64,000 bases of DNA from Pavona decussata. Taxonomy: Eukaryota. Made by a program: the position numbers and the translations under genes. The DNA lies in the NCBI GenBank assembly GCA_977016875.1, contig CDRNST010000287.1, forward strand, positions 124,001 to 188,000. The letters are read 5' to 3'. Every line of letters starts with the position of its first letter. The stretch's first letter is position 1. Positions 23,446-51,850 of this stretch are shown here, in pieces. Under the pieces are notes generated by a model. It saw nothing but the letters and a program-made list of their open reading frames with translations. It ran no database searches and was not told where the DNA came from.

Positions 23446-26400
23446 CTACACCTTTGACTTATTATATGGGCAGTCTTTGTGACTCTTGCGGGAGTGAGTG
23501 TTGCTACCACACCATTTGCACTTCTTCCCTCCCACTTCTACAACTGCTCCGTGGGGTGCTGGCATAGTAGTATCAGGTAGAGTGATACCAGTCGCACTTC
23601 CATCACGGACTGCAGACTCAGTGAGCAACACTGCTTCTTCTTCAACCAGGTCATCCTCTGCATCCTCACCATAGGTGTTCTGTATTCGGCAATTTTTGAC
23701 ATATTTCTTTCTGAAGGAAAGAAAACAGACAAAGATTGATATCAACAACAACATAAAAACGGAAAATCTGTTAGAGCTTGGCTTTTCTAATAAAATGCAT
23801 TTCTTATCCTTCCCAGTTTATCAGGAAATTTTGTGTCTAAGTAAAAGCAATAAGTAAATATCTCCACAATGTACAGTAGTCTCTTTAATTATAGCTAAGA
23901 AAATCAACTACCTCTAGCCTAAAGTTTACACATTAATATTTAAATAGAAGACAGTGGAACATGACTCTACTGAGGTAAGAGAAAGTACCTTAGCTTCTGC
24001 TCCTCTGCACGGTCAATATTTCGCTGTACTCTTTTTCTCTTCCCTTCCGCAGTTTTGTAGCGCTCCAGTCTCTTGTATCTCTCCTCATTGTCGTGTTGAC
24101 TGTAATAAAATGGTCATAGTTACAATAATATTAGCTCTTTATGTTCATTGTATTGTAACATCAATTGCAATGTCCAGTTATCAACATATTTTCCTGTGAT
24201 CAACAATGATCAGTGATCGACAAAATAGATGAAACACCAGTAATACATTACAAACTTGTCACACAAATAAAATTTTTGCAGGAAACATGCTCAGATAGGC
24301 TTACATAGATACAATATTTAAGCAATAGGCCACACTTTCTATGTGTTTACCAGCACAATAACCCACGTGGGATGTTGGGAGAACACGATGAAAGCTTGTA
24401 CATTGTAAAAGTGGGTTATCATGCCACTAAACCCATAGAAAGTGTGGTCTATTGCTTTTATAAAATAACTTTAAGTTTTCTACGAGTTTACCGGTACAAT
24501 AAACCATAGGTTTTTAACCAATCAGAGCACGTGTACTATCTTAGTTATTTTATAAATAGCACATATAACAAATCACATACAAAGTAGATAGAACTATGCA
24601 TCCCATTTCTTGAATGCCATCAAGGACTGGAAGACCCATTCGTGAATAGAGGTCAGGGATCCAATGGTACTCCGGTCTTCTGTTCTTGTAGCACCAAGCC
24701 ATGTTGGCCGGGAGTAATCTAAGTTTGTTGCAGCATGGTAATGCTTCATGTGCAAGTTAGTGTCCTTGGCGCAGAATTTAGTGAGAACACTAAATGTTGA
24801 CTCAAGGAGATTTGAGTGCCCTTTTCCCAAGTCTGGCTTGATGACCTTCTCAGCATCTTTGGCTCTTTCACTGCATTCTATTTCATACGCCAGCGCATGA
24901 AATTCACATCGCAGAATGTGAGCTGAGTGATATTCCTCACCAGAACATTTGAGTTCTGCATAAAATCCATCAACATCCGCTTCACACTTTTTACAGCTTC
25001 ACTTAGTGAGTGGATGAAAGCTGCAGGAACCCCCCTGCCATTCATGAATATCTCTACAGTGGTACTTTCCAAGGGCCAACATAGTTTGTCTGTATTTATC
25101 TGGGCTGTTTCCAGCATGGACCAGGGCACAATAGTGGTTTCGCTTTGCATTTTGGAATTTTGGATAAAACCCGGACCAATACACCCACAAACAGGTTTGT
25201 TTCTAGTGGCAACAAATGTATGACTTTTTGCCAACACAACATTTGACAGATTCAATTGAAGGAAATTCTCTTTTGTGTAAGGCAATAAAAGCAGATGAGA
25301 ATGATGACTTTGTTTTAAGCTCCTCAAGCTTCTTCCCATGGGCCCTTCCAACATGGCCCCCACACAACATGATTCTACTCTCTTGTTCATTTGAGTATGA
25401 CTGGCGAAACCCCTTGGCTGAGGAAGAGTCAGCATCCTGCCAGTTGACTTCAACTTTTAGCCCCTCTTCTTTGGCTTTGGCCCATAGCACTTCACTGAGA
25501 TGCCCCTCAGCTAACTTGGCTGTCCCCTGCCAGAGTTCCTCATCACAAATGGTGTCAGCTCGTCTCATACAGAGATGCCCATAATAAAGAGGGGCACCAG
25601 TAAAAAAAATTCTTGATCACGAATGTGCAGTTTTGACTGAAATGCCCTCTAATCAACCAACACCCATCACAACAAGTAACAGCTCTAGACCAGCTGCCTA
25701 TCTGGTCAGCTAGGAGTTCCTTCATCTTCTCCTTTCCATCTTCACACATCTCATCCAACATCGACTCCTAAGGTCTTTCTGCACCCAGCATAACCATGCC
25801 CACTAATAAAAAGGTTAAGGAGATGGCCAAGGACACTAATTGTCGTCTGGATTCTTGGGCAAGGTAACTACTCTTATAATCGATCTCAACAATCCAGCAA
25901 CCACAAAACTTGAAGGAAAAGACCATTGCCCCTCCAAATCCTTTTTTGCCATATGCTGTAAGAACGAGTGGGCCTGTGAAATAAGTTTGAGCGGGAAAAT
26001 CATGTAAGGTAATTGTGTTAGAAAATTTATGGTATGACCTCCTACAATTTTATGGAATTGTGAGAGCACTTATGACTGTGAAGGCCACAACCTCTAGCAA
26101 AACAGCAGTAGTCATATTGATCATTTTTCACTATGTCAAATTGAGTATTTTCAAACAAAGAGGCATGTGAACACTTTGCGTTTTCAGAATTGAGGTACCT
26201 TATCTTTCTAACCACAGGTGGCTTAGACAAAATACGAAACAACTATCCCCCAAAAGGGAGGGGAATAGTGGTGAATATACCAAGACGCGAAGCGTTCAGG
26301 TATATTTCTAGCGCTATGAACTGACCCTGAGGGGTATAGTTGTTTTAGTATTGACCAAATCAGTTTAATAAAAATTTAAAAAAAGTATCTTTTTGTGAAA

Positions 26401-26675: not shown

Positions 26676-26706
<31 letters not shown>

Positions 26707-27941: not shown

Positions 27942-28103
27942 CGTTGCTATGGGGAGACGTCAATGTTTTCTATCGCTTTTTCTGATTGGTTTCGTGGGAA
28001 AAATAGAGGGCCTTTGTAAGGGCATAACAGTTCATATAGAGAGTATTCTTGGCGTTTTACCGCTGTAAACAATTATCGAACTGTTCAGTAAGATGGCCGC
28101 CAT
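27942..28103 (-). promoter_or_regulatory. Putative promoter of Kolobok transposase copy A (YY1-, E2F-, CCAAT-, CRE- and X-box-like motifs)
   Basis: Same six motif blocks, in the same order, as at 39152-39313 in copy B. Confidence 0.6.
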
Positions 28104-28695
28104 CAACCACAGATTGGGATAGGAACCTTTTGTGGGATATTTTCGCAATTATCAGTCGCTTTTCAATCACAAAAGGCCTGCAAATTTAGAGAGGGTTTAT
28201 ACTAAATTTAGATTTTTTGCGTGGATTTATTGGAAAGGCATGAAACTTGGAGCATATGACAAACACACATACAATAATCGTTCTGTGGCACCGCGTCAAT
28301 ATTTCTTGAATATACGACTCGCGACAACATAAAAATTACTGACAAGGTAAATTATATTTTGCAGTGTAAAATATTCCCGTTTGTGTAAATTTTGATGCAC
28401 TGCCAAAGTTTGGTAGAAAATGAAAGTAATCGTGTGGCCAAACATCATGGTCAAAGAATGAATTTTGCTCGAGTTTTTTCAAAAAATGTGATGTGACGTG
28501 ATAATGACCACACCAATAAAAAAGTCGAATTCCTGGAATACTTTAAATTCTTGTTGGAAATACATTTTTTTTCAGAAAGTACACGACAGCTTCTGACGGA
28601 TGGTAATTTGACAGAGTTGGAGCAAGTATTTTTTTTAAAACAAAGCATAACATTTCAGGGAAAAATGCGAACAATAGCCTCCAGGAATACCTTAA

Positions 28696-29405
28696 GGAGC
28701 CTGTTCACACTTTCAGGCTAGAGTAAAGTATACATCAGACTGCTGAAAGAGCAAGGTTTTTTTTCATATTTCACCATTTTCCCGTCTTTTTCTTTACAGA
28801 AAGCCTACTTTATCAAAGGAATTCATTTGGAAATGAATAAAACCCCCGTGTACCCACATGAAGCAAGAACAGTCACAATTCTGATTATTATATCGATCAT
28901 GTGCACAGGTCTTGGGTGAAATGCATTGTTGGATGATATGGTTTGTAAACCATCAGTCCTAATGACAACATAAATGAAACAGAAAAGTCATGGGAACAAA
29001 AACAATAAAAGTTATTTTTCTCTTGAAACAAACTAACAACTAATTCAGCATGCTATGTTTTCAGATGCTATTTCTTAGAACTATGCCTCTAGCAGGAAGA
29101 GGAAGAGGCAAGAAGAAAATGGCACCTATGAAAAATATCAACAAGAGCAGAAGAGAAGGTAAAGGAGCAAAGGGTAAACATTATATCACTGATTAAATAA
29201 CATGAAAGCATGTAAGTCCCAGAACAAATTATTACTGTATACACTTAAGTAATATAAACCATGAACGATAACACCCAACAGCTTTTAGAAAGTAAAACAC
29301 ATAATTTTCTATTTTCTAAGATTACTTTCAGGCAATTGAAAGGTATGTTTGGGTAGCTAATGCAGTTTGATTTCATAATTTGCTCCATAACATAATTTCA
29401 TAACC
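28696..29405 (+). repeat. ~710-bp direct duplication, copy 1 (copy 2 at 33074-33775); includes an exon
   Basis: Colinear from GGAGCCTGTTCACACT to CATAATTTCATAACC with scattered substitutions and indels. Confidence 0.92.
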
Positions 29406-32025: not shown

Positions 32026-32259
32026 AACAAATAACAATAGCCAGCTACTAAGAGCTTAGAGATGAGTAAGAGATAATAGGAAAAGTTTTGTCTTCGAGCT
32101 CGCTCCTCTAATAGTTTGTGATCATGCTTGAGATTGTAGTCGTTGCCCTTTCATATTCAGCTTACAGTTGTGTACCTTCTTCTCCTTAGTTAGCAGATGA
32201 GTTTATATATTAAATAGCAGCAAACACATATTGCAAGATGATTGTTGGTATTATTTTGG

Positions 32260-34390
32260 ATGCATTAATTTTTTGGCACATTTATTATCATCGTGGGGAG
32301 AATGAAGACCCAAGCCAGGCAGCTTCAACAACTTTACTTAGAGAGACCAAAGAAGTAGAGTAAATTAAAAATGATCCACTCTACACGGAGAGGCCTATTT
32401 TGGGTAAGTTCTTATGACCATGCCTTAGTTGATGTACTGACCATATTAAAACAAGGAGGTGCATGTCTGTGTGTATTAAAGGTACCAAATTTTGCAATAA
32501 TTGCAGCTCAAGGCATTTATCTTCTCAGATGATATAACAGCAGTGGTAACACTATAACTTTTACTAAATAGGAAATACGCCTTTGTCACTCAGCACCCTT
32601 CTTGTGTCTCAGAAGAATAAAAAGCTGTGTTTTTGCACAGCAAGCGTCACACTGAATTTGTATCAGGATAAGGCTTGCTGTGCAAAAACAATTTATTCTT
32701 CTGAGACTCATCAACATGGCCACGCAAGGCAAAGGTCTATTCACTGGGACTTTCCCAAGAAAAAGAAAGCGAGGGAGCATGTGGACATTCTTTCGATATG
32801 GCATTCCATGATACCAGATTCAGTAATCAAAATTAGATTGGCTAGATAAACAGCTGTTGACAGTTTTGCAAACAATGTGAACTCATTAAACACCATTTTG
32901 AATGTCTTGTGGTGTAAATTTGCATATTTTTGTCAAAGAAAATGAACTTCTTACTTCTAGTTTTGGAGAGTCAAAATGGTGGGATCAAGAAAATGTGCAC
33001 AGGTTGTCCCTTTTCTTTCTTGTCCTTAGACCAAGCTCTGCTTGTGCTTTCTCGTCACCATATAACCCATTACGGAGCCTGTTCACACTGGCAGGCTAGA
33101 GTAAAGTATGTATCAGACTGCTGAAAGAGCAGGGTTTTTTTTCATATTTCACCATTTTCCCATCTTTTTCTTTACAGAAAGCCTACTTTATCAACGGCAT
33201 TCATTTGGAAATGAATAAAACCCCCGTGTACCCACATGAAGCAAGAACAGTCACAATTCTGATTATTATATCGAACATGTGCACAGGTCTTGGGTGAAAT
33301 GCATTGTAGGATGATATGGTTTGTAAACCATCAGTCCTGATGACAACATAAATGAAACAGAAAAGTCATGGGAACAAAAACAATAAAAGTTTTTGTTCTT
33401 TTGAAACAAACTGACAACTAATTCAGCATGCTATGTTTTCAGATGCCATTCCTCAGAACTATGCCTCTAGCAAGAAGAGGAAGAGGCAAGAAGAAAATGG
33501 CACCTATGAAAAATATCAACAAGAGCAGAAAAGAAGGTAAAGGAGCAAAGGGGTAAGCATTTTATCACTGATAAAATAAGATGATAGCATGTCAGTCCCA
33601 GAATAAATTATTACTGTATACACTAAGTGATATAAACCATGAATGATAACACCCAACAGCTTTCGGAAAGTAGAACACATAATTTTTTATTTTCTAAGAT
33701 TACTTTCAGGCAATTGAAAGGAATGTTTAATGCAGTTTGATTTCATAATTTGCTCCATAACATAATTTCATAACCCATACAGCATAACACTCTTTACACT
33801 TCATTTTACCCATAGAAAGCAAATAGAATTAGTTTTTCTTGTGATGTGAAAGTTTCAGGTGATGTTTAACCAATTGAAAGAAAATTCCAGCTTCTTATCC
33901 ATTTACTAAATCCAAATTACCGTATTAAGGCTTTCTCTAAAAGGACCAGTGGGTTACAGCTCTGTTGTAAAGGCTACATGTATCCTGAAGTGCATTTGGT
34001 GTCTATTTTTGAATCATTTTTACAGTTATTTGATGTTAATAACTTGTTTCTACCTGTCAATTGTCAATTTAGAAACTGGAAAAAAGACTGAAAGTTATCA
34101 ATGGATCCCTCCATTTCAGCCTTGTCTCCTCAGATGAGTCAGAAGATGAAAGGGATGCCTTGGCCACCAGGCCTTTTACCTGGAGAGTGGAGGTAGTATC
34201 AAGCTTCTTTAAGACAATGGATGCAAGGTGGAAGGCAGCAATGACACCACAAAAAAAGCGTCAATCAGTAAGCCAAAGAAATGGCCTTCCAAGTCTTCCG
34301 AGCCATAATGGAGTTAAGAAGGCAATATATGCAGTACTGAGTAACAGTGATGTCACAGATGAAGAACTGAACCCCATTTACACGCACTAA
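32260..34390 (+). pseudogene. Degenerate spliced gene for an uncharacterised basic/acidic TE-associated protein
   Basis: Exons at ~32260-32403, ~33443-33552 (DAIPQNYASSKKRKRQEENG...) and ~34073-34390 (KLEKRLK...VSSDESED...RPFTWRVEVVSSFFKTMDARW) with AG/GT boundaries. Confidence 0.45.
33074..33775 (+). repeat. ~700-bp direct duplication, copy 2
   Basis: Colinear with 28696-29405. Confidence 0.92.
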
Positions 34391-34780: not shown

Positions 34781-36769
34781 TGACACAAAAAGTTATTACG
34801 TTTCCAATACTGGATCAATTTGTATCAAATTTGGACACCAAACAGATCTTGGAGAGATGTGCACAATGGAAGCATAAATTCTTACCCCCTCCTACATAAG
34901 ACATGATTAACCACCCCTCCATTTTTTGTAACTTTTTCCTCTTACGCTTTTAAGACCAAGTCACCATTTGACAAGAAACTATGTGCTGAGATCTGCAAAT
35001 TAAGCTATAGTTTAGGGGTATACCCAGTGTATACGAGAAGTGAGATGTATTTTAAGGTTTATATTTTCTCGTTTTAAACACTTTTCATTCTCTTCTGTTA
35101 CTTCCTTTGTCTAAGCTGGAGTGATTTATACAATGCCCCAGATAAAACCTTTTAATTGGTGTATTACAGTTGTTGTAGGGGTTCACAGTTGCCGTTTTAC
35201 AAAAATACGGCATTTCCCATGGGAGTGAAAGGGATAATAGAACTGTGGGCAGAAAAAAACTATACAGATTGCCTTAGAAAACGCAAAGTCATCAAAAGAC
35301 ACTTGTTCTGTGTACCAAAACCTAAAGGTAAGTTCGGAGGTCATGTCTGCTCGTTTTGCATTGCGATGCTTATATCATTCTCAAATGTTAAGAAAACAAC
35401 AAACTGTGAGAGGATTTCCTGGTCAACATAAAGACAATAATTCTCATTGTCATTGCCATTATTATTATTGTCATTGTTATTAACTGTTATGATTATTTAT
35501 CATTATTATTGTTTTTAATGTAATACCACCTACCATACCCATCAACCTCATGCTATCAAAACACAGAAATATTGAACTCTAAATCAATTTTCCTGCTGTA
35601 TTCACCTGCCTTTACCAAATTTTTTTTCTCAACAGAAAGCCTGGCAATGTCTGCATCAAAACGAAAAGGTAAATGACATATTCAACTTATTGAGTCCACT
35701 TGTCAAGATGTCAGTTATGTCTTAACATCAATCATTACAGGCCTACTGATTAGGCCATGGCTTATGATGCATCATCAATTTCAGGTCTACTTACAATATA
35801 ACTTGTGTTCCCTTTTAAGGTGGTACTGGAGGCTAAGGTGGACCTTTCAGATTCCTCTGATAATTTGTGACTTTGTAGAGCACATATAAAGAAACCTGCA
35901 TGCAAAATTTGGAGTCTGAGAAGCGATGCGTTTCTGAAATATAAACCAACAAAGTTTGGTTTCCAAGAGGGCATACTGTGCGGGACGAGGTTTCATGTGT
36001 CTAAATGAAGTTTTGCGTTGACAAATCTGTTAATTAGTACATGTGCAAACTGAAAGATGAAACTGTCATTGACAGAAGAGACAAAACCTCTACGTTCGCT
36101 TTCGTGCCAGGCACTTGACCGAGCTTTTTGCAATGACGGGTAAATGATAATTTCTTCATAATATTTTGTTTTTAAGACCACTTTTCAGCTTTATTTAATT
36201 GTACTAACATTGATGCCATTTTTCCTTTAGTTTCGCCGGCACACCGCCTGGATTTGCTAACATTTTGCGGCGAACCCAGCCACAGAAGTGGGAGAGTCTT
36301 GAAGACTGCCAGCACATACTTTTCCACCGGTTTTTTGGGATTCTTTGGGTGAGTGTTATTTTATGACCTTTCTTTTACCTAACCTCAACTACAACATAGT
36401 TGACATTTAGGTCGAGCCATTTTGCATCTCGTGGTTGAGATCTTCACGCGTACGAACAACACATGGTTGTCAAGCTTTCTATGTATCCACGTGTTTCGTC
36501 AGTTGCACTTCAAATAATTGTGAGTTGCTTGTATGATCTGCTTTTTGCCAACCCAGGCAGTTTACTTTACGGATGGTTAGCTTTCTTCAGCAGCGAGCAA
36601 ACCTACATACATATGTATTTTACCTCTTGGTTACTCTCACATGCATGGTTTACAATGCATTGGGAATCAATCACATGACAACTGATCTTGCATAGTTTTC
36701 TTTGCCTCACCACTTACTTAATTATTATGATGTGGAATGTCTAATTGCTCCTCTTTATATCTCTACTAG

Positions 36770-37308
36770 TTTGGCAATGGCGTGGGAAGAGGTGCTTTTT
36801 AGGGAAAGTCACTCCCAACCTATGTTCACCCTCAAAACATAAAGACTGTGCATGGTGTCAGGGAAGTTATAGGTGGAGAGCTAGGTGACTACCCAAGATC
36901 CGCAAGGGCCTGTGGTATGTATTTATTTATCCCTGAAATTAAGTAATCCATTAGGTTTGCTGCAAAGCTTTTTGTCCGAAACTAAGCTAAAATCACCGTA
37001 TTTCCTTGAGTGATCACCCACCCTAATGCTCTAAACAGAAGTTTTTAAAATATATATTCACAAAACTTGTAAGTAATGTCAGGACTGCCTGCTTTTGCCC
37101 GGGGGGTGGAGGGAGAGGGCTGGGCGAGGGTCAGTTTCAATCTCAGTGATACTTCACAATTTTCTCAGAATTATAGAGTATTTCTTGCAATATTGAACTT
37201 TACACTGTTTTTATCTGTTCTCCCTAGGTGTACCATGTGTATATGAAGGACTTTTTTGACGCTAAATGGCCAGACACAAGCAAAAACAAAACCAAGAAAA
37301 AGAACTGA
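36770..37308 (+). pseudogene. Accessory gene of Kolobok copy B (last exons)
   Basis: AG|FGNGVGRGAFR...|GT and AG|VYHVYMKDFFDAKWPD; homologous to 21786-22263. Confidence 0.6.
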
Positions 37309-37925
37309 TTACATAAATTAGATAGATAGTAGATTTTCCTTACACATAAGTAAATTTTTGCATACTTTTTTGTTCGAGACTATGAATTGTAAAATTAATT
37401 ATTTATTTATTTATTTATTACAATATTTTTTTATCAGCTGATATAATTTGTGAAAAATAAGTTGTTAAATACAAGATTTAGATTTTTGTTCAGTTGGAAC
37501 ATTGTAGAACAATTTTTTTTTATTTGCGTGTGTAAATAACCACCTTTTTTACAATAAAGCAAACATGCAATAATTTTTGTTTTTGTTTCTTTGAAAAAGT
37601 TGTACTGGCTCATTTTGCATGCTAGTGGAATGCAGTCAGGGATGTACTTTGGCAAAGACTGGCAGCCTGATGTTACTTATAATTTTACCAAACAATATAT
37701 ATTTGCATTACCTACATGCGGCGATAATCAAAATAGTGACTAGAAAGGTGAAAATTGATAACTATTCAACATTGTGATGGAGAACAAAATTTCCCCCTAG
37801 ACGGTAAAATAATCCACAGGAAAGTAAGTGCAGTCCAGTTTTCCTAAGTTGGACATTGACATAGCAGGAAACAGTGTCTGTCATGGAAAGAATTCAACTT
37901 TACAGAATGTATATAAAGCTTGGCC

Positions 37926-38062
37926 TTAACTCATAGAATTGTTAAAAGTACAGTCTTTGTGGCTCTTTCGCTGGCGAGTGCTACTACCACACCACTTGCA
38001 TTTCTTTCCGCCAACATCAACTTCTCGTTCAGCGGGGGCAGGAACAGGCTCTAACACTGGGC
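37926..38062 (-). pseudogene. Displaced 3' half of the last transposase exon of copy B (CCHC knuckle)
   Basis: GPVLEPVPAPAEREVDVGGKKCKWCGSSTRQRKSHKDC aligns with copy A VEVGGKKCKWCGSNTHSRKSHKDC. Confidence 0.85.
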
Positions 38063-38064
38063 CA

Positions 38065-38164
38065 AATTGAGAACTTGATGTTTGGAGGTCAAAAGTGAAA
38101 TATTCATTTCCTGATTTTGCCTTGTTTATTGGCGACACTTTATGAATATAGCCTGGATCAGTAT
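38065..38164 (-). pseudogene. Displaced N-terminal part of an OB-fold (RPA1-like) gene
   Basis: AG|..TDPGYIHKVSPINKAKSGNEYFTFDLQTSSSQF; continues as KVVGFDRK at ~45654 (+) once the inversion is undone. Confidence 0.7.
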
Positions 38165-39151
38165 CTAAAGAGGAAAGAATATTGATGAATACTGTATCTT
38201 ATAATGGATTATAACCACTAGAGTGGGAGAGAGAGAGAAAGTGTAGATTCCCCAAGGATGTCAAGCTTGTTCTTTTAAAAATGGTATACTTTTTTCTTTG
38301 GGGAATTTGTCAGTAAAATACTTTTAAAAATTGTATTCTCTTCAACTCTAGCATAATAACGTTTATTTAAAAAAGTAATAATTTGTGAAATTTATACTGC
38401 ACAAGGCTCCATTAGAAGATGCTCACCTGTTCATTACACTGTATAAAAAGGAGGTATATAAAATATATAGAGTAAATTATAGAAATTACTATTCTTTATT
38501 CTTAAGGTATATTAAAATATCAATGAGAATTTTATGTAAAAAGGGAACATAAAATAGTGACTACTGTTAAGGTGATACTGGAGGCAAAATTGGTGATTTT
38601 TTGCACTTTTTACTTTGAAAGAAACATTAGAAATATTAACCCTAGGGGAATGTAATTTTCAGAGCTAATACAGAATTGTATCTAGATTGTAAAACTTTAG
38701 TTGTTCAAAATAATTCAAGGAATTCGTGGAATTTAAGGGGGTGGTGTGACTATCCTTTTTTAAGGGATCAGCCACCACTGAAAGGGAATTTAACTGTTTG
38801 CAATAAAAATTGTCTCAAAGAAATAGCATGCAAAAGACACAAATTTTCACTGGAGTGCATCACTGGAAAGCACAAAGAAACAATTTTAGGATAAATAATA
38901 TAAACTCTTCTTTAGATGAAGTTTGTCACCTTGTCCTGTACTTGATATCTCGAGAAATATGATGCACTCCTGCGAAAACTTTCATAAACACATCTAGTTT
39001 CTTTCCTCCAAATTTCACATCCTTCTGATTTATCGTTCAAATAAATTCACATTTACTGCATACTAATATGGAAATTTAAAGCAAATTTTCCTGGGAAATC
39101 GAGTGTAACTTGAAGAAATTCCCGCAATCGTTCCATTTCTTTCTCACACAC

Positions 39152-39313
39152 TGGCGGCCATGTTGTTGATGCCTACAATACCAGTTTCCAGCGGAAAAAA
39201 CACAGGAAAATTGTCCCAAATTTGGTTCTTATGCCCTTTTTCCTGACTCCATTCTTCCCGCGAAACCAATCATAAACGCCATCATAAAACAATGACACCA
39301 TTGCATGGCAACG
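39152..39313 (+). promoter_or_regulatory. Putative promoter of Kolobok transposase copy B
   Basis: TGGCGGCCATGTT, CAGCGG, TTATGCCCTT, TTCCCGCGAAACCAATCA, AAAACAATGAC and CATGGCAACG are conserved with copy A. Confidence 0.6.
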
Positions 39314-40460
39314 CCACCTCGTCCGACCTCAAAGGGATCAAATCGCCGTTGTGTTGACAGCCCTTTCAAGCTCAATTTTGCGCTGAAAAGTTATTATGAA
39401 GAAGACGTTTATGACTTCTAGTGAAAGAAAACAAAGTGATTTGAATCATTTTCGAGGCACTGGTGCTTTGTCGAGAATTTCCCTTGATTTTGACAAGCTT
39501 CGGAACCCTGGGTGGACGATTACAGAGCGTAAAGACACATCCCCATGGACACATTACAAGTATCACCAGAGGGAAGAACTCAAAAAAGTGCAAAAGATGT
39601 AGAAAAAAAGTTCCGTTACGAGGGTACACTGACCGAGTTCTTGAAGGACGAAGAATCCAAAGAAGGAGAAAACGAGAACAAAACAGAAGACGCTGATGTG
39701 CCATCATCAAGCCGCTCGCAAGCGTTTGATGATGACTCAGAGTACGAGCCACCGGATAAAGTAAAAGCTTGCGCAAGGAGTGTGAAGCAGTGAGTATTTT
39801 TGTATTTCGGTGAGATAAGGTTCTGTGTTACTTGTCTCTCTCTTTCTTATAATGCTTTCTGTTGCTGTTTCAAAGTTTGCTTGTCTTGCATCATCTTACA
39901 AATATACTGAATTCAATGCACGTTTTGATTAGTTATTACAAATGAGGTGCATAGCTTACATCATGAAGAATTTGTTTTCTATGTTTTGTCCAATTGGCGG
40001 ACAGTTTTGAAAATGAGGACCACATTATTGATCTCAATTCACCAAGTGAAGGCATAGAAAAAAACTTAAGCCAAAAGTAGTTTTGTTTTGTTTTAACCAT
40101 GTTTCATCTTCATCTGTGATCTATAACTGAACAGATGCATAGCAACATAGACTGCAGTGCAGTGCAGTCGCCACTATTTTATCAGAATTTGCCCTGGCAG
40201 AGCCTCACTTTTGCGATGAACACCAGGGCCCAGTTGTTCGACAGGCGATTAAACTAACCCATGATTAACATTTATTCCGTGATTAAATTTGTTATTCCTG
40301 GGATAACTAATCCAGGGATAAAAAGCTGTTCCTGAAAGCAGATTTAATCCTCGATTAATTATCCTCCAATTTAGATTTACATTTATTCACAGCTTGGCGG
40401 CTACGCACGCAAAAAAAACATAAAGAAGGATGTGAAGGCCATACCTGAAGGAAAAAAATA

Positions 40461-41421
40461 ATGGCAGAAAGTGTCGCGGGACATGAAGAAATCAACTCTG
40501 AAGCAAAAGAAAGAAAACGAAAACCCAACTTTTCCGTTTACGAAATTGGTGTGATTATTGAAAATGCTAAAAAACACCTTGAAACTATTCAGTTGAAACT
40601 AGCAAACAATGTCACCAACAAAAAGACACGAAATCTGGAAAGAAATTATGCGAGCTGTTAATGCAGTGGGAACAGCAGACCGTACGGTGTCCGAGGTGAA
40701 GGACAGGTGGAAAAACCTTCTCAGTACCGCAAGAAAAGAGTTTTTTGAATTCAAGAGGGAGTTGAAGAAGACTAGAGGAGGGCCGCCGCCGAAACCCCCA
40801 AATGTTTCAAGTAAAGAAATTATTGAAGTGTTTGAAGGCTTATACTAAATGAATAGCAATAATTGCTTCTGTTGTAAGCTTAAGCTTAAATTTGAATGGT
40901 CAAATCCTTGTACATGTAAACTTATAAAAACCTGAGGAAATTGGCAAGTTGTTTCACAACTAGATACAAGCTAGCTCTATTGAATTAGATGGAGCAACTG
41001 TACTTGCTAAGTTGTACAAATACACGTAGATTTGGTGTCTTACGATTGGAAGTGTTGGAAATGAAATTGTTACAACCATTAAGTGATTATAATCAGACAA
41101 AATAATATTAATAGTAATTGACATAAATTTATTTTTTCTCTCTAGTCTCTGAAGCTACATTACCTATTAAAAGTGCTACTGTTTCTGCCAAACTCTTATC
41201 CAATATTGCCAGCAGTCTGGATGAAAATGTTGAAGATGAAATTCAAGAAGAAAAGGAAAGTGAAGAAACGAATAACAAATGATGATGTCCTTGAACAACA
41301 GTTCAAGGCATTAGTTGCCAAACGAGAAAATTTGACTTTAAAAATGAGAAAATTGGAATTGGAGTTGTATCTTTTGGAGCAAAAAGTGTTGCAAGGGGAC
41401 ACCACTATCCCCACTGAATAA
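40461..41421 (+). pseudogene. Harbinger Myb/SANT-like DNA-binding protein (NAIF1/MSANTD4 type); two exons, frameshifted
   Basis: RKRKPNFS..EI...NNVTNKK/RHEIWKEIMRAVNAVG..RTVSEVKDRWKNL...KKTRGGPP; coiled-coil second exon. Confidence 0.85.
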
Positions 41422-42224
41422 CCTAAATACAAGAACACGATATACTGTTGCTCCCAGTACATCAAGGATTGTGTCATTAATAATTTATTATTAAGAATTT
41501 TTTTCATGTAAATTTACTTTAGTCAAATTTATTTGCAATTCTGTTAATTGCATTACTGTGGTCATAAATTTCCATTTCTGACAAGTTAAATAATTTATTT
41601 ATGTGTGCAGAGCAAATTTACTTGCAGCCACCTTTTGAGTCAACAACTCCTTGGCGTTTATGTGAACTGTTAAAATTATCAATCAATAACAAATAAAACA
41701 TGTACAGTGAAGTCAAATTTATGTTGCGATTATGTTACAGTATTGTGGTCTTAAATTTCAATATATTACAAGTAAATAATTTATTTAAGTGAGTGGGGCA
41801 GATTTACTTGAAGCCACATTTTGAGTGAACAACTCATTCTACAAAATAAAAAAATGTTGTCAGTGTTAAAAATGGTCAACAAAAAGTTACATATCAAGCA
41901 TTTTATAATAAAACTTCCAAGTTACACATACTGCGTGTTGTTTTTCCGATAGGTCTTGCAAATGTGATCTCCATGAACTTTTCAAAGCCAAAATATGGAA
42001 CCATTTCTCTCAGATCTTGGAAATATACAAATCTTTGTACTTTTCAGATAACATAATGGTTTAATAGTGGTCCTTAAAATAAATTATTGAAGTCCATGGG
42101 TCATCACAGTCAATCCCATTTTTGTATCATTCAGTACAGTTGTGGGGTTTTGGACTACTACAGTCTGTTGCAACAACCCAGTTAAACTGGTTTCTTTAAG
42201 AAATAGAGATCAACAAGAAGTGTC

Positions 42225-42697
42225 AGAAAAAAGTATTACAAATGTGGTCTCTGATGACCTTGCCATTTTCTGGACCACGATATCAAATAGGATCAGGCTG
42301 ATCATCAGCTTCAGCATGGCCATCCAGAGGTTCGTTCCTGAAAATTGCTATGTTGTGCAAAACTGCACAAGTTCCAGTCATCATGCAGACTTTTTCTGGC
42401 TTCATCCTAGTCTCCGAATGTAGCAGGTGAAACCTTCGCTTCCACACGCCAAATGCTTGTTCAATTGCTACCCTTGTTCGTGTATGTGCATTGTTAAACT
42501 CTGTCTGCTTGTTGGTGCCTGGATTCAAGTAAGGGGTCATCAAGTAGGGCTTGCAAGGATAGCCACTATCACCTAACAGCAAACCATCTCCCAGGGATTG
42601 GTGCTGGGCATTGAGTTGTTGGCCAATTTGTGAATGGTGAAAATAAAGCTGTCGTGCGTGCTGCCTGGCCATCTCGCTACAATATTTCTAAACATGC
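42225..42697 (-). pseudogene. HARBI1-like DDE transposase, last exon
   Basis: VARWPGSTHDS...LLGDSGYP...YLMTPY...FNNAHTRTRVAIEQAFGVWKRRF...CAVLHNI. Confidence 0.92.
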
Positions 42698-43433
42698 CTG
42701 AAACGAAACAAAATCTCTATTAGGTAACAATTCTTTGACATGTAAATTTGATTCGAGTTTAATTGAGGGATAGTTCAATGCAAATTTGTACAAGACAATT
42801 TATGTACCTATCATGTTTGTTTGTATTTGGGTTTGTTGACAAGGTTACGAGGTTTCAGCTGTGCCCATCCTCCCAGGCAATAGTTAGGCATTTGCGTAGG
42901 TTTTAATCCTGGGGTGGGGCTTTTGAAATATTATCACTACACGGGAGCCGGGTATTTGCTTTAACCCACAGGACAACCCCAGGGCACTTGATACCCTAGC
43001 TGTTTTGGTCTCGCACATGGAAGAGAGTGCAAACATGTTGTCTGTTTCATTAACCTGTCGATAAAATATGGATCAAATGTACCGGTAATTAAGTTATCAA
43101 ATCTTTTATTTTGCATTTGTTTGTTAAAGGATCATGGCAACCTCCTTCCAAGGGTCCTCTCCTTCTTGTCCCTTGGAGGTTGGGATCATGTGTCTTCTAT
43201 TCTTTGATACTGTACTGTATTAGGAAGCTGGGGGGGGGGGGGGGGGCTGTCACAACCTGTGATGGTTGTTGGCAGATAAGAGGGCATTTCAGCCAAAATT
43301 GTACTTTTATTATAAAAAATTATTTGACTGGTGCTCTGTTATATTATGTACACCTTTCCATGCGGGGTGCTGATAACATCAGTGCATCAGTGCTGAGGAA
43401 CTGTGGCAGGGGACAGCAAAGGCAGCCGAGGGT

Positions 43434-43830
43434 TGCTCTCAAGGGACAAGTGCCTCCGATTTGCACAACTTTTTGAGCCTATGTTATCGTTTAGGGGTAC
43501 CTATACCACATGAAAAAACCGAAAGTCCTTCGACCAATTTACAGTTTGACACGTTTAATATGGAAGCACGACTGCTGGATGATAAGCTTCAAAAATGCAA
43601 TGCTCGGTTATTGGACATGCACAAATGCCGAAAAACTACCCTTAAAGTACTTCAATCTTTGATTGGCTTATTGAATTTTACTTGCTCGGTTGTTCTACCT
43701 GGTCAGGCCTTTCTTTGGAGGCTTGTTGATCTCACCAAGGGTGTCCGTCTACCTCATCATCGTATACGGATTACTGAAGCCTGTCATCTCGATTTACAAG
43801 TATGGCTTCAATTTTTAAGAGATTTTAACG
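43434..43830 (+). mobile_element. DIRS/Ngaro retrotransposon RT-thumb fragment inserted in the Kolobok DDE exon
   Basis: LGVPIPHEKT...EARLLDDKL...LQSLIGLLNFTCSVVLPGQAFL...DLQVWLQFLRDFNG, located between Kolobok WQGTAKAAEG and ILWVKAKEEG. Confidence 0.8.
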
Positions 43831-45652
43831 GATTTTATGGGTCAAAGCCAAGGAAGAGGGAATTAAAGTGGAGGTGAATTGGCAGGATGCTGATTCGTCC
43901 TCTGCTAAGGGTTTTTGTTTTTCCTTTGCAAGCGAACAGGAATGAAAAGTTATGTTATGTGGTGGGCTTGTGGGGAGGGCACATGGGAAGAAGCTCCAGG
44001 AGCTTCAGGGAGAGGGTTCATTTTCAAAAGCCTTTATTGACTTACACAAACAGCAGTTCCCCCAAATTGAGTCAGTAAAATGTGTTTGTCTGGGAAAAAA
44101 CATAGTTATGTGTCCACGTGGAGCAAGCAACCTTGTGGTTGCATTGGGCCTGCCTTTATACAAAATGCAAAAAGAAACCACTACTGTGCCCTTGTGCACG
44201 CTGGGAGGGACCCGGGTGTGTATAGAGACATAATGCTTGCACTGGGAAAGTACCATTGTCACGAAAGTACCACCAGTGAGAGGGTGGTTCCTGCTCCTTC
44301 CACCCATGACTAAAGTGTTCTTGCAAAGGGTGCAAAAGTGACGTGGAATGGTTTGTGGAAGAACTCAAATGTCCTGGGGGACCTTATCATTCAACAAATG
44401 TTGTAAAATGTGAATTCCATGCCTTTGCGTATGAAATTGAATGCAACCAAAGGGCAAAAGAGGCAGAAGGGGTAATTGATCCTGGGTTGGGAAAGGGCCA
44501 TTCCAACCTCCCTGAGTCCACATTTGGCATCCTAACTAAATTTAGGGCTAAGGAGATAAATCTACATCGAGAACATTATCAAGGAGCGACAAACCTGGGA
44601 CTTATTCAGTCAAGTATGACCTGGTGTTAACAAGCTAGAGGCCCTTAATACCACTGGATTATGGACCTGTATGCAAGAATGGGGTTACCCCTTCTGGATG
44701 GAATCAGACAAATGTTGTTAATTTTAGTATTCTTTTATATCTGATATGTGCAATTCTTGTTGATATCAATAGTCAGAATTTCCTGTCACCCCAAACCTAT
44801 AATTTTACCCTCCCTCTCTCCGGCCAGCAAAAAAGGGCAATAAATAGTGGTTTGGTGGGCGGGCGCGGGATTTCGGAATTATTTTTTGAACTGGACAATA
44901 GAGACAAGCCATAAACATCTTTTGAAACATGTCCTATTGCAGTGAGTCAGGGCAGTCCTGTGAAGTAGGCAGATTTCCACTTTATACTCTCATTTGTTGT
45001 AAATCATTGGTGTTCCATCTTTTGCAAATATTTCCATTTATTTTCCAGTGTGAAGCTGACACAGAAGAGATACAGAATAGGCTAGACAGAAAGAAGACAG
45101 ATGCTGGTAAAAGGAAGAGGGTTCAACAAACCTTATTTTCATGTATTTCCTCAAATAATAGCTAGGGGCTATAATTATTTTTTATCACTTCAAAAGGGGG
45201 CGATTATTCGAAGGAGGTGATTATTTTAGATGTTGCTCACTGGAAATTGTGCCCTTCACCTTTTTTCATATTGGGAGCTTTCAATCAATGAGTTGTGTCC
45301 CATCTGGCTCCTCAGTGCTATTCTCTGATTTTACCATGGTGGAGTTCAAGAAGGAGGAAGGAAAGGGGAGGCGATAATTCAAAGGAAGCAGTTATTCCAT
45401 ATATTTACTCTCAAAAGGGTAAAGGGTAAAGTAATACAGTACTTGTTTTGTTGTAAACACGTCCTCCTTATTTATATGGTTAGGCAAATAAGGCTATACC
45501 GTACATTGTGTACTTTTATCTTAGGAAGAAATATGTACAAAGACTGCACATATGTCACTCTTATGGAGAAGACCCTGAAGATGATCAAGTGAGTGAGGAC
45601 ATTGCCACAGAAGTTACACAAGCAGCCTTGGCCAATGGGACAGCACCCTCTG

Positions 45653-46580
45653 CAAAGTGGTTGGTTTTGACCGTAAAATCATAAACAAGGACTTCATTTC
45701 CTGAACACTGGTACGCCAATTCGAGTATTGAATGCAAATGGAAAGGATGACAACCTATTCTTCAACAACTACTCAACTATTGCCAAGGCTTATTCAGGTG
45801 ATATTCACTTCGAAATCAAAGAACCATCAACTGACTTACCAGCCAACTCCAACCTGCCACATGGTAATGCTATTCAAATCTCACTCAGTCAGCTTAACGT
45901 GTTAACCAGGAATCAAAGAGTCAATGTTAAAGGAACAATCACTATGGGAGGTGCTTAACCAAAAGAAGTAACAAAGAGAAATGGAAAGCCAGGCCTTGTT
46001 AAAAAGGGCTGTGTAATTGAGGACCAAACTGTTCATACAAGAATCCACTTGTGGGATGACATAATTTAAAAGTGAAAAACCTCAACCAGTTATGAGATCA
46101 CAGATCTAAGCGTAAAGAACTACAATGGGCACATACATCTTGGTTCAACAACTGACACAACAATCAACATGCATGTTGACAACCCTCAAGGACCACAGCT
46201 GGTTACCAGAAAACAGTAAAAAGAGAGGAATACATGTTTACAGATAAATTAAGTGTTTTCATGACGTGCCAAATCAACAGCTGCAAAATGAAAATGCCAT
46301 ATGCAATTGAATCTCCTGTCTTCACATGCCCAAGCTGTGGCACATGCCAGAAAGTCAAACCAGCAACAAAGGATGCTACCGCTCGGTTATGTGCTCAAAT
46401 TGAAGCAAGTATGGCTTACAGCCTTCACTGATGTGAAGGAGAATTTACTAGCCAAAGTACACTTATCGATTAATGACACCCGATAAAATCAAGGAAGCCC
46501 TACTGAAAATGGAAAATATAACATTAGTTATTGATTCTGTGTCAGACTTCATCTTGGAAGTTGAAGAAAATGGTACATGA
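45653..46580 (+). pseudogene. RPA1-like multi-OB-fold ssDNA-binding protein with C4 zinc ribbon, degenerate
   Basis: KVVGFD...FFNNYSTI; NQRVNVKGTI...CVIEDQT...IHLWDD; SVKNYNG; TCQINSC...FTCPSCG; WLTAFTD. Several stops and frameshifts. Confidence 0.7.
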
Positions 46581-47416: not shown

Positions 47417-50400
47417 GTTTTCACATATATTGTGAAAACAGATCCTGAAGGTAGCTCTGCTACTCAAATTAAGTGTGAGGCGGACCTTAGCAGATTACGT
47501 TGATAGGTTATACTTCATATGTAGCTTAAGCTTAGTTTATTTATTATGCCCGCAGCCTTTATCTTTCTCTTCCTCTCGATCGTCGATCACGTTACAAAAC
47601 TGATATTATTACAAATTTTGCTTCATTTGCTTCGATGACGGATGGAGGTTTAGGATTTTGCATAGCTTGTTTTTTTCACTTTCGGACGAACGCGGATAAA
47701 TCCCAGAAGAGTAATTTAAGCGTTAGTGTCCTTTTGTTATTAGCCTTAGTTTAGTGTCAATTATTTTGTAGTCCGTGTTTTGTTTCCTTTTTTGGGGGGC
47801 CTAATTTTCTTTAGCTTAATTTATGCTCGAATTTTGTTTCTTACTGTTTTGTATAAACAATGTCTAACTTGAAGATTTTGTCACCGAATGTGCGTGGCCT
47901 TCGTAAAGCAGAAAAAAGAAGAGCTATATTCTGTTATCTGAAAAAACAAAAAGCTTCAATTTTTTGCCTTCAAGAAACATTCTCAAAGACAGAAGACGAA
48001 ACTATTTGGCGTGCTGAATGGGGTGGACAGATATTATTCTCTCACGGCTCAGAGCACTCTAGAGGTGTATGTATATTAGTGAAACCAAACGGCTTTCCCT
48101 TAGAAACCATAGAAAATGATGAAGAAGGGCGGTATATCTTTGCTAATTTGAAATTAACAACAGAGGAATTATCATTAGTCAATATTTATGCAACAACGGA
48201 TTGTCGCCTGCAAATTCCATTTCTGCAAAAAATTACCCACCTTTTGGTAACTAAAACCTGTGTTTCTAGGGTCATTATGGTAGGAGATTGGAATACAACG
48301 CTTAGCCATCTAGACAAAAGTGGTGGCCTTCCATGGAAAGAAACAATTTATAGGAATGGTTTGGTGAGTTTGATGGCGGAACTTAACTTGGTTGATGTTT
48401 ACAGAACACTTCACCCAAACACAAAAACATATACTTATGAAACCAAGAGTCAAAAATTAAAGTCTAGAATAGATTACTTCATAATTGCAAAACAATTAAT
48501 CAACAAGGTAAAGAAAACAGAAACACGATCCTCAATTGCTCCCGATCATAAAGCTGTCTTTCTTAGCCTTGAAATCGATCAAACATTTAAACGTGGACCG
48601 GGTACATGGAAATTTAACAACACCCTACTGAAAGACGACAAATATATAAATTTAATTAAAAACAATTACTCTTCTATTCAAGAGAAATACAAAGAAATTG
48701 AAAGCCGTCAACTGTATTGGGAATTGGTAAAAATGGAAATAAGAAGTATGACAATTGTCTTCTCCAAGAAGAAAAGGTTCAATTTGAGAAACCGTGAAAC
48801 AGCCATCCAACGTAAGTTAGAAGAGCTAGATAAGGAAATTTGTAATAATCAAAATCTAGACGATGATATTCTAACGGAGTACGAGAACCTTAAAAAAGAC
48901 CTGTCCGAAATTTATCATACAAAGGGAAAGGAGGCGATGTTCAGATCAAAAATAAGATGGATTGAGAATGATGAAAAACCAACGAAATACTTTTTTAACT
49001 TGGAAAAACGGAATTATGAGAAAAAGATTATAACCCAGCTTAAAACAATAGACGGAGAAATAATCACGGATTTAAGCATGATAAATGAAGAAATAGAAAA
49101 CTATTACAAAAACTTCCTGACTGCTAGAATCCCACAAGACGAGAACAATAATTTCGACGACAACTTTGGCCGCTTCTCCTCTGATTTACAAAATCCAAAA
49201 CTAGCTCAAGACGAAGCAAGCGAACTTGAGCAAGAACTGACAAAAGATGAACTACTGAATGCCTTAAAAGGTTTCCAACCTGACAAAACTCCAGGTGATG
49301 ACGGTTTCACGAAAGAATTTTATGAAATCTTCTTCGAATTGCTATGGAGGAACCTCCTCGACTCTTTCAACGAAGCCTTTCAAACAGGCAAACTGTCTAT
49401 ATCTCAGAGAAGAGGAATTATTTCGCTAATACCAAAAGATGAAAACAATCTTATGGTTTTAAGCAACTGGCGTCCAATAACATTGCTTAATGTCGACTAT
49501 AAAATATTGGCTAGAGCTATTGCAAAAAGAATAGAGACGAAGATGCCCAAACTGATTCATTCGGACCAAACAGGGTTCGTAAAAGGACGATACATCGGTC
49601 AAAATGTGAGGCTTTTAAATGACCTGATGGAATTTACCGAATTAAACAAAGTCCCAGGAATACTACTCTTTATAGACTTCGAAAAAGCCATTGATACATT
49701 AGAATGGCCTTTTATTCATCACACTTTAAGATTCTTCAATTTTGGCCCGAACATTCAAAAATGGATTTCAGTACTCTATAGCGATGTTGAAAGCGGAGCT
49801 ATAAACGGCGGATACATGACTAATTATTTTCGAGTATCAAGGGGCGTAAGGCAAGGATGCCCGCTGAGCCCTCTATTATTCGTCCTATGTGTAGAACTTC
49901 TTGCACAAAAAATACGACAAAATCCGGAAATAACAGGTATTGAACTACCTAATTCCATTGAAGCTAAGCTAAGCCAGTTCGCTGACGACACTACATTAAT
50001 ATGTAAGGACACGATGTCATTACGTGGAAGTATGTCAGTTTTGGGGAGCTTTGGTGAAATTTCAGGTTTAAAGCTAAACAGCAAAAAGACAAAGGCTATG
50101 TGGATAGGCTCTTTGAAAAACAACAAAACCAAACCCTTAGAGATAGATGTTCCAGCGGACCCAATTAAGACCTTAGGAACCCATCTTTCAAACGATAGAG
50201 ACAAAAATAACAATTTGAATTTTTATCTAAAAATTCAAAAGATGGAAACTACATTAAATATCTGGTTGTCTCGCGACCTTACACTTATGGGAAGAACCCT
50301 GCTTGCTAAAACTCTAGGAGTCTCTAAATTGGTGTATGCAGCCTCAATGTTGACTGTTCCTCAAGAAGTTATTAAAAGAGTCCAAACCAAGCTCTTTAAT

Positions 50401-51850
50401 TTTTTATGGAAAAACAAAAAAGATAAAATAAAAAGGGAAGTTCTTTTTCAAGAAACAAGTAAAGGTGGCCTGAACTTTCCAAATTTTGCAACGACAGTTA
50501 AAGCACTCCGCTTGAGTTGGATTGGTAGACTGCTTAACAGTCCAACTACCGATGCATGGACAGCTATTCCAAATGCTTTTTTTGAAAAATATGGAGGTCT
50601 TAACTTCTTGCTCAAGTGTAATTATCATATAAAGAAACTAGACAAAAATTTACCGTCTTTCTACTTAGAAATGCTAGAGTACTTTAAGGAATTACGTCTA
50701 AATCGCCAAGATAAATACAAAAGTGACCTTGTTTTATGGAACAATCAAGACATAACTATTGAAGGTAAATCGCTGTTCTGGAAAAGTTGGACCGAAAATG
50801 GAATTTACTACATTCAAGACATTCTGAATGAAAATGGAAAATTCCTAACTTATGAAGAATTTAATCGCAAGTACAAAATAAAAATTAATTTTCTAAACTA
50901 TTTTCAAATCCTGGCATCAATTCCAGCAAACCTCAAATCAAAGGCAGCTTCTACACCCAGACCTATGAACTTTATTCTCGATGATTGTGATACATTTGAC
51001 TTATCTAGGGACAAATCGATTAAACTTTCAAAAATGAAATGTAAAGACTATTATCATCTCTTTCAAGAAAAAGCAGAAGTTACACCAACAGCCATAAAAA
51101 CTTGGGCCAGACAATACCCCGATATAGAATGTAAATGGCAAAAATTATTCCAAAATATACCTCGCCTCTCTACTAACAACAAACTGAGACAATTCTCCTT
51201 TAAAATGTTACACCGTATTTTAGTGACCAAAAAAGAGCTCAAACGATTTAAAATAGCAGATAATGAGGAGTGTTTTTTCTGTAATTCAGCTGATTCCTTG
51301 GAACATGCATTTCTGGAGTGCCCTGCAGGCCAAAAACTCTTTCAAGAAGCCTTAACATGGTTTAATAATAAGCACAAAGTAAATTTTACTCCATCTAAAC
51401 AACAGTACCTATTTAAAGACTATGATCCACCCCCGAGTACTAACTCAAAATTAATGCGGAAATTCCAGATCCTTACTGTACAAACTCAGAAATATTACTA
51501 CTCATGTAAAATGTTAGAAAAACCTCCAAATATTCTAGAATTGAAGTCAGCGCTAATCTTACAATGGAAAGTTGAAAAATGGGAAATTTAAAATTAATTA
51601 CAAAATTTCATCCTTTTCTTACTGCTTTCCTGTTTTTTTTTTTTAGTAGCGTGTAACCCGCAGTTTGTAAGTAATCTAGTTACTGTTATGTTTAAGGCTA
51701 TCTGTATTAAATTGTAAGTAGAGTCCTGTTTTGTTCAGTAGCGTAAGTAACCAGTAAGCATGTATTGTAGGTAGAATACTGTATTGTCTAGTGATATATT
51801 TAGCCCGTACTGTAAGTAATGTAAGTAATGTGATTTTGCAAACAATAAAG

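Follow-up and report, generated by a model that had tools for sequence, protein, structure and literature searches.

The stretch of DNA considered here, hereafter "the window", comprises 64,000 nt of the stony coral Pavona decussata (assembly GCA_977016875.1, contig CDRNST010000287.1, positions 124,001-188,000, forward strand). Within it lie a rearranged transposon of probable Kolobok type ("copy B"), a PIF/Harbinger element nested inside that transposon, and two separated pieces of what appears to be a Helitron open reading frame (ORF). A diverged Kolobok copy in the same window ("copy A", 21786-28691) serves as comparator. The features, in window coordinates, are as follows.

23449..23817, minus strand: comparator, the last Kolobok coding exon, unbroken, in copy A
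35815..35818: TTAA target-site copy at the left end of copy B, directly 5' of the terminal motif, as in relatives
35819..38060, minus strand: part K1 of copy B, outside the inversion, bounded by the terminal motif GGTGGTACTGGAGGC at 35819 and by the breakpoint
37926..38060, minus strand: last Kolobok coding exon, distal part (PVLEP...CKWC zinc knuckle, then a stop; approximately residues 49-93 of the 93-aa exon of relative L042)
38061..45654: inverted segment, 7,594 bp; the alignments of relatives stop at 38060 and 45654, on bases that are adjacent in them
38061..38198, minus strand: predicted Helitron RPA-like ORF, first ~35 codons, pointing away from the remainder (residues 3-35 of the intact relative P0129 align to 38153-38055, minus)
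38199..38566: flanking sequence outside the Kolobok, between its end and the RPA-like ORF, moved with the inversion
38567..38570: second TTAA target-site copy
38571..45654, plus strand: part K2 of copy B, inverted, matching L042 842-6029; terminal motif GGTGATACTGGAGGC at 38571
40226..43221: PIF/Harbinger nested inside K2 (Myb/SANT-like ORF 40461-40848, plus; DDE_Tnp_4 42283-42672, minus)
45525..45654, plus strand: last Kolobok coding exon, proximal part (...EDPEDDQVSEDIATEVTQAALANGTAPSA; residues 1 to ~48 of the L042 exon)
45655..46430, plus strand: predicted Helitron RPA-like ORF, remainder, decayed (P0129 residues 36-199 align to 45662-46168, plus)

The transposons at the locus

The terminal motif of copy B (TTAA followed by GGTNNTNCTGGAGGC) occurs three times in the window, against 0.14 occurrences expected by chance. 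TTAA adjoins both termini of copy B and of its relatives L042 and L043, and a single end in L044 and in copy A. The ends begin with GG, and a terminal inverted repeat (TIR) of ~18 nt, GGTGGTACTGGAGGCTAA, is inverted in L042 and L043. In an alignment of 14 homologues (A2), D125, D202/D204, and C226-G-G-H229 are invariant, Cys/His clusters are conserved, and N408..E411 is near-invariant; the catalytic residues, assigned by position, are putative.

Among Pfam models the nearest is PF20700, "Mutator-like transposase", a sub-threshold match on copy A and a precomputed one on some homologues. MuDR elements have target-site duplications (TSDs) of 8-11 bp, and none of that type was seen at the ends of copy B. 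The Kolobok superfamily is said to go back to Kapitonov and Jurka. Its members duplicate a TTAA target, have 5'-GG...CC-3' ends, and encode a DDE transposase that bears a CxxH motif and a zinc finger ahead of the last E (PMC9587614). The copy B family shares the TTAA, the GG...CC ends, the DDE/CxxH features, and the zinc finger. With its TTAA, 5'-RR...YY-3' termini with short TIRs, and the DDE/CxxH residues of its homologues, copy B can be assigned to Kolobok on sequence features. Its family differs in bearing an MBD-like N-terminal module (weak Pfam hits) where Kolobok has THAP, and copy B itself, unlike a typical Kolobok, is rearranged and dead.

That loss of activity has causes besides the inversion, among them the nested Harbinger and the frameshifts. 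The Harbinger insertion measures 3 kb, the transposase core is missing its first ~113 residues, and the copy contains several frameshifts. The Harbinger (Pfam PF13873 and PF13359) is absent from the Kolobok relatives and has further copies on C67 and C354.

What the first-pass annotation took for an exon of an OB-fold gene is, by its relatives, most plausibly the RPA-like second ORF of a decayed Helitron, and not a host gene. The intact 343-aa relative P0129 lies 450 bp downstream of a Rep/Hel protein (Helitron_like_N plus PIF1) on the same strand, an arrangement seen at two loci, and the paralogues L039 and L041 have a helicase C-terminus upstream of their RPA-like ORFs. Within the window no Rep/Hel remains were detectable, and the RPA-like ORF alone survives, decayed and split. 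The remainder of the ORF is frameshifted near 45700 and meets a stop codon at 45956-45958, beyond which come a second OB-like stretch and a zinc-ribbon region; a splice-acceptor-like tract lies 5' of the ORF start, at ~38165-38180.

Pfam gave no matches on the window's own OB-fold pieces. A profile of the RPA-like ORF (A1) matched Sulfolobus-type SSB at E = 2e-6 and RPA70 at E = 4e-3, and a structure model found its best fold matches in RPA70 DBD-A/B (1fgu and 1jmc, E ~1e-10), with a mean pLDDT of 55.6 overall and low confidence in the first domain. These results support an OB-fold protein of RPA/SSB-like architecture that is predicted to bind ssDNA, and the intact relative P0129 likewise has tandem OB folds like those of RPA70 DBD-A/B.

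Breakpoints and the re-inverted sequence

Three Kolobok relatives elsewhere in the same genome (on C288, C144, and C266), intact and 85-89% identical to copy B, align to window positions 35815-38060 and 43831-45654. In all three, the bases matching 38060 and 45654 are direct neighbours (for example, 6030|6029 in L042), which places the left junction at 38060|38061 and the right junction at 45654|45655. K1 matches L042 8383-6030, L043 876-3222, and L044 766-3125 at 84% identity, and these alignments stop at 38060; window 38061-38566 had zero matches to the Kolobok relatives.

Flipping 38061-45654 in silico renders the whole 7.5-kb element colinear with L042 and L043. One 4.29-kb alignment then spans the join, and so does a 211-nt alignment without gaps at 91% identity. 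All 93 of 93 residues of the last Kolobok exon, which is unbroken in at least 12 other genome copies, align in one frame only once the segment is re-inverted. (In the joined and re-inverted sequences, an X was placed at the breaks for the protein model.) The earlier expectation that re-inversion would restore an exon colinear with copy A and bring the sequence into line with intact family members is borne out: a single copy A frame (23817-23449, minus) matches both halves, its residues 29-75 at 45502-45645 (plus) and 85-121 at 38045-37935 (minus). The terminal motifs at 35819 and 38571, direct in copy B (both on the plus strand), are inverted in L042 and L043, elements that each have TTAA and flanks of their own, and they become TIRs upon the flip, as had been proposed.

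The ~7.6-kb reciprocal inversion proposed by the first-pass annotation thus holds, since relatives are colinear only after the flip, but its breakpoints (38062|63 and 45652|53) were 2 nt off. At the revised positions the exon reads APSAPVLEP, as in relatives. The 2-bp TG microhomology reported at both junctions vanishes there; we reject it because it needs three mismatches to the relatives at the join instead of one. Microhomology at the breakpoints is 0-1 bp, with at most one shared A at the right junction.

On the Kolobok side no bases were lost and none duplicated, and the two halves abut without overlap or gap. The OB-fold-side junction is 1 nt short, with no duplication, and the 1-nt frame offset described earlier for the rejoined OB-fold gene is real; the paralogues L039, L037, and L034 run continuously across this point, with one residue at the join. 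Helitron paralogues were too diverged at the DNA level to align for an empty-site comparison. One base may have been lost at the right junction, or a 1-bp A overlap used; the deficit on the OB-fold side could equally stem from a later indel in an A run or from a change in the decaying ORF before the inversion. Apart from that 1-base deficit, neither junction contains a duplicated, deleted, or templated stretch. The data support an inversion in situ, with reciprocal breakpoints placed to the base, that was independent of repeats and joined end to end.

Origin of the inversion

We consider it very probable, from the anatomy of the junctions, that two double-strand breaks in and near the Kolobok element were followed by reversal of the segment and end joining without repeats or transposase. 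A Kolobok (TTAA target, GG...CC ends, ~7.5 kb in intact relatives) would have inserted ~400 bp upstream of a Helitron RPA-like ORF. The chromosome would later have broken twice, once in the last Kolobok coding exon, separating the bases that now stand at 38060 and 45654, and once in about codon 35 of the RPA-like ORF, separating those that now stand at 38061 and 45655. The 7,594-bp piece would then have been religated in reverse, presumably by non-homologous end joining (NHEJ), judging from the junction anatomy. This agrees with the earlier reading of an end-joining-type, repeat-independent event: inverted repeats were not found at or near 38061 and 45654, the Kolobok bases are kept, and the OB-fold-side junction lacks a single base. 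Non-allelic homologous recombination was discarded as well, the repeats that it requires at the two breakpoints not having been found.

A transposase-driven event (alternative or reversed-ends transposition by the Kolobok, the nested Harbinger, or the Helitron) has in its favour that three DNA transposons meet at this locus and that inversions are known to arise by alternative transposition (PMC8225341). Alternative transposition places its junctions exactly at transposon termini, with a matching TSD (PMC8225341). Here, one break lies 2.2 kb inside the Kolobok and the other 506 bp beyond its end, and neither junction has a transposon terminus or a TTAA or TWA duplication. These positions already largely refute a transposase origin, to which we assign a next to negligible probability. 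The reversed-ends inversions of maize Ac/fAc (PMC8225341) resemble the coral case in involving a cut-and-paste transposon with abnormally oriented ends, but their junctions sit at the termini with a TSD and the coral junctions do neither. Two signs of transposase hairpins were also considered and set aside: palindromic (P-nucleotide) junctions, the palindromes GGCC and TGCA being off-centre from the breaks, and cryptic RSS-like CAC motifs, the CACT sitting 2-3 nt from the breaks.

Replication template switching (FoSTeS/MMBIR), or staggered breaks with fill-in, is an alternative to two clean double-strand breaks, and mechanisms of this kind often underlie inversions. Among 29 fixed inversions of Drosophila, 17 have inverted duplications, ascribed to staggered breaks (PMC1885836), and a weak AAC..ACT similarity is present near both break sites of the coral. 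This similarity, however, amounts to 4 of 10 columns with both copies kept, the Kolobok bases are exactly preserved, the other junction is off by one base, and nothing is templated. Staggered breaks in particular would leave an inverted duplication at both junctions (PMC1885836), and the OB-fold side is short rather than duplicated. We regard these mechanisms as very improbable.

The NHEJ-type inversions of Drosophila (Ranz et al. 2007, PMC1885836) are among the nearest known parallels to the end-joining origin that we favour: there, too, the breaks fall in non-repeated sequence, the ends are joined, and the co-occurring breakpoints lack inverted repeats. Most of them carry the inverted duplications of staggered breaks, whereas the coral inversion shows no such duplication and preserved the sequence to within one base; at 7.6 kb it is also very small, and it is confined to dead transposon sequence.

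A further question is whether the animal carries the inversion at all. A 7.6-kb stretch could have been misoriented by the assembler, or a heterozygous state collapsed, in a region rich in transposons, and neither junction was found in independent sequence. Exact 32-mers spanning the left junction as it now stands, or the Kolobok join in its ancestral form, had no matches among metagenome contigs. Because those contigs contain neither junction form and the protein collection lacks the chimeric ORF described below, the junctions rest on one assembly. In that assembly, neither a second copy of either junction nor an un-inverted allele or haplotig was found, the other matches being paralogues at 85-89% only. 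Assemblers, on the other hand, flip at inverted repeats, of which these breakpoints have none; at assembly-level identity the sequence at both junctions is unique, its closest paralogues reaching only 85-89%; and a junction one base short resembles biological joining more than a flipped block. An artefact is therefore unlikely, and we infer that the inversion arose in the animal, its junctions being known from this one assembly.

Consequences and meaning

The inversion splits both the Kolobok and the RPA-like coding segments. The claim that the breakpoints lie inside two exons needs amending: both coding segments are cut, but the second belongs to a Helitron ORF, and is thus borne by a transposon and not a host exon, and here it is already a pseudogene. 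The joins that the first-pass annotation described are present in the sequence: the minus-strand ORF 37926-38138 joins the OB-fold start (...YFTFDLQTSSSQF) in frame to the Kolobok tail (GPVLEP...CKWC), and on the plus strand, at 45508-45684, the Kolobok exon start (...ALANGTAPS) is followed by KVVGFDRK, in the next frame. Because its termini are now direct, copy B cannot present inverted ends to a transposase. That the inversion immobilised the element is right in this geometric sense, but the copy is also dead from the Harbinger, the partial loss of the transposase core, and the frameshifts.

The chimeric ORF has 70 codons without an ATG and is absent from the protein collection, where its only relatives are Kolobok tail exons at no more than 73% coverage; an ORF within the inverted segment is likewise not on record there. 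We take the 70-codon frame to be a chance product of the inversion. There is a very slim chance that the inversion is a young, perhaps segregating variant whose transcribed left junction splices the RPA-like acceptor onto the Kolobok tail, giving an OB-fold/zinc-knuckle peptide.

The mutation is of an ordinary type and the assembly resolves it well: a probable end-joining inversion confined to dead transposons, with no hint of an effect on a host gene and little importance beyond the locus. It does provide a clean worked example of how multi-copy transposon families can serve as internal references, so that one genome suffices to resolve a small rearrangement to the base. The junction signature is conservative and repeat-free, with a 0-1 bp overlap, and many such cases, gathered genome-wide, would show the range of ways in which double-strand breaks are repaired in coral germ lines.

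The inverted segment and its breakpoints

The first-pass annotation proposed that 38063-45652 is inverted, and that observation is confirmed. Both junctions read as it described: the minus-strand ORF 37926-38138 runs from ...YFTFDLQTSSSQF into GPVLEP...CKWC, and plus-strand ...ALANGTAPS at 45651 gives way, one frame over, to KVVGFDRK. In a translated comparison with the 35-48-kb region, a single open frame (23817-23449, minus strand) of copy A, the diverged Kolobok copy at 21786-28691, matches 45502-45645 (plus strand) with its residues 29-75 and 38045-37935 (minus strand) with its residues 85-121. The remaining coding pieces of copy A all match 39.3-45.1 kb, colinear and in the opposite orientation. 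Genome searches covered the 602-Mb eukaryotic assembly containing the window, in which at least 12 additional copies have the exon split here as a single unbroken open frame.

Copy A shares only ~69% DNA identity with copy B, the split Kolobok copy; closer family members (84-89% identity) lie on contigs C288, C144, and C266. Copy B aligns to these relatives as two blocks on opposite strands, ending at window 38060 and 45654, and the block ends adjoin on each relative (6030 and 6029 in L042, 3222 and 3223 in L043, 3125 and 3126 in L044). By direct alignment, the left piece is identical to the relatives as far as ...CACTGG and unrelated beyond; the right piece, reverse-complemented, shows no relation as far as TGCAGAGGG... 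and matches from there.

The re-inversion suggested as a check at first pass was run on local constructs, as for all joined sequences, which were compared locally only. Flipping 38061-45654 gave one alignment of 4.29 kb that spans the join, and rendered the whole 7.5-kb element colinear, with residues 1-93 of the relatives' 93-aa last exon aligning in one frame. The breakpoints originally proposed also align without gaps, but with three mismatches grouped at the join, and the exon reads APSGPVLEP against APSAPVLEP in relatives. As 38061-45654 leaves one mismatch, we place the breakpoints between 38060 and 38061 and between 45654 and 45655, with Kolobok bases neither lost nor duplicated; the 2-bp TG microhomology previously reported becomes an overlap of 0-1 bp.

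Classification and ends of the Kolobok element

Kolobok elements are marked by a TTAA TSD, by 5'-RR..YY-3' termini, and by a C/DxxH motif in their DDE transposase, in which a zinc finger precedes the last E in almost all lineages (PMC9587614, 2022). Judged from its sequence, our element appears to carry all of these features: its ends are GG...CC flanked on each side by TTAA, and across 14 aligned homologues D125, D202/D204, and C226xxH229 are invariant, E411 is nearly so, and Cys/His clusters are present. Among Pfam models PF20700, "Mutator-like," comes nearest, but TSD and ends are at odds with MuDR. The closest named homologues of the transposase are in stony corals (Montipora, Porites, Orbicella) and other cnidarians. 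The N-terminal exon of the family has weak, sub-threshold matches to MBD (PF01429) and DUF7028:

39411-39790, copy B, N-terminal exon
27530-27946, copy A, N-terminal exon
L042 1700-2101, relative, N-terminal exon

The terminal motif GGTNNTNCTGGAGGC has three occurrences in the window, where chance alone would give 0.14:

28691, minus strand, copy A, preceded by TTAA
35819, plus strand, copy B, preceded by TTAA
38571, plus strand, copy B, preceded by TTAA

Both ends of L042 and of L043 bear this motif, inverted and with TTAA, and the flanks differ, which marks these as independent insertions that have true TIRs. The termini of copy B are direct, the arrangement that the inversion would leave. 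From the junction to the second terminus, 38061-38566 has no match to any Kolobok relative. It is flank carried along by the inversion, which therefore took place in situ, after Kolobok insertion.

Copy A has the motif at its right end only; neither the motif nor a TTAA-bounded terminus is found at its left boundary, 21786, so copy A is probably truncated or that boundary misplaced. Its last exon has a 97% identical twin on C57. The sequence just outside its right end (28692-29405) recurs 4.4 kb away at 33070-33775 (94%), this repeat beginning exactly at the transposon end, and a second flank piece, 21089-21219, recurs at 32023-32153 (91%). Either a paralogous empty site or insertion of copy A into one unit of a tandem repeat could account for these repeated flanks.

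A probable Helitron RPA-like ORF as the second gene

Both the Kolobok exon and a second coding segment, the "OB-fold" ORF, are split by the inversion. The pieces of the latter in the window have no Pfam match of their own, but have paralogues in the genome. We set a model of the pieces, X marking each break, against the paralogous loci, of which L039, L037, and L034 continue straight through the junction (e.g., ...QTSSDKFAKAIGFDQK). Intact 343-aa proteins in public assemblies were reached via a paralogue; in one of these, P0129, residues 3-35 align to 38153-38055 (minus strand) and residues 36-199 to 45662-46168 (plus strand).

At two loci a 2,428-aa protein carrying OTU, Helitron_like_N, and PIF1 domains is encoded 450 bp upstream of P0129, and a helicase C-terminus lies just upstream of paralogues L039 and L041. 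Among solved structures the family profile matches archaeal SSB and RPA70, and the best fold match of a predicted structure model, of low overall confidence, is RPA70 DBD-A/B. Given this placement beside Rep/Hel-type genes and these matches, the second gene is most probably the RPA-like ORF of a Helitron rather than a host gene. It is decayed in the window (frameshift near 45700, stop at 45956), where a search for Rep/Hel remains detected none.

The 1-nt frame offset noted earlier in the rejoined ORF holds: it is one nucleotide short of its closest paralogues (TTT GGC, then AAG TGG, where F-x-K-V is expected). The deficit would fit one A lost, or a 1-bp A overlap used, at the right junction; alternatively, it may be a later indel within the A run.

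Another coral-type assembly has a Helitron that seems intact (L045; ENA ERZ26858540; 2264-9550 and 10001-11032). It encodes a Rep/Hel of 2,428 aa that includes DUF6570 and two OTU protease domains, then the 343-aa RPA-like ORF, and serves as family reference. About 1.4 kb downstream of the decayed ORF in the window is an uninterrupted 1,243-aa non-LTR retrotransposon ORF (47860-51591, plus strand; Exo_endo_phos, RVT_1, and zf-RVT) that looks intact.

Mechanism and consequences

No inverted repeat was found at the breakpoints, which excludes recombination between inverted repeats. Alternative transposition would place the junctions at TE termini and give a TSD (PMC8225341); it was rejected because one break is 2.2 kb inside Kolobok, the other 506 bp outside, and no TSD is present. 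Inverted duplications, the expected trace of staggered breaks (PMC1885836), are absent from the junctions. This lack of repeat, TSD, or duplication supports the repeat-independent, end-joining type of inversion first proposed. The junction anatomy points to two near-blunt double-strand breaks whose ends were probably reconnected through non-homologous end joining, overlapping by 0-1 bp.

An assembly error is unlikely, since nothing at these two unique points would make an assembler flip the segment and the one-base deficit at one junction is typical of biological joining. Neither junction form turned up when metagenome contigs were scanned. The first-pass interpretation is supported, with corrections to breakpoint positions, microhomology, and the second gene's identity.

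The chimeric ORF it described does exist as a 70-codon frame, but lacks an ATG and is a by-product; a search for relatives found none covering both halves. It also held that the inversion immobilised the element. The ends of copy B are indeed no longer inverted, so it cannot excise as a unit, but it is dead anyway for other reasons. The first ~113 residues of its transposase core are absent and the rest has several frame changes, ~730 bp of the relatives' sequence is missing at 39841, and a nested PIF/Harbinger of ~3.0 kb (40226-43221), absent from Kolobok relatives, contains:

40461-40848, plus strand, Myb/SANT-like ORF
42283-42672, minus strand, DDE_Tnp_4 fragment

Further copies of this PIF/Harbinger are on C67 and C354 (87-94% identity). 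An insert of ~400 bp at 43434-43830, lacking in the Kolobok relatives, breaks up the transposase core; it is overlapped by an open frame of 138 aa (43461-43877, TTG start) that has no Pfam match. Within the Kolobok family, ~110 bp at 45143-45255 match more than 30 dispersed genomic loci (71-82% identity). Possible origins are a short interspersed repeat, a MITE-like repeat, or capture of a fragment.

What the window holds is a well-resolved yet ordinary end-joining inversion inside dead transposons.
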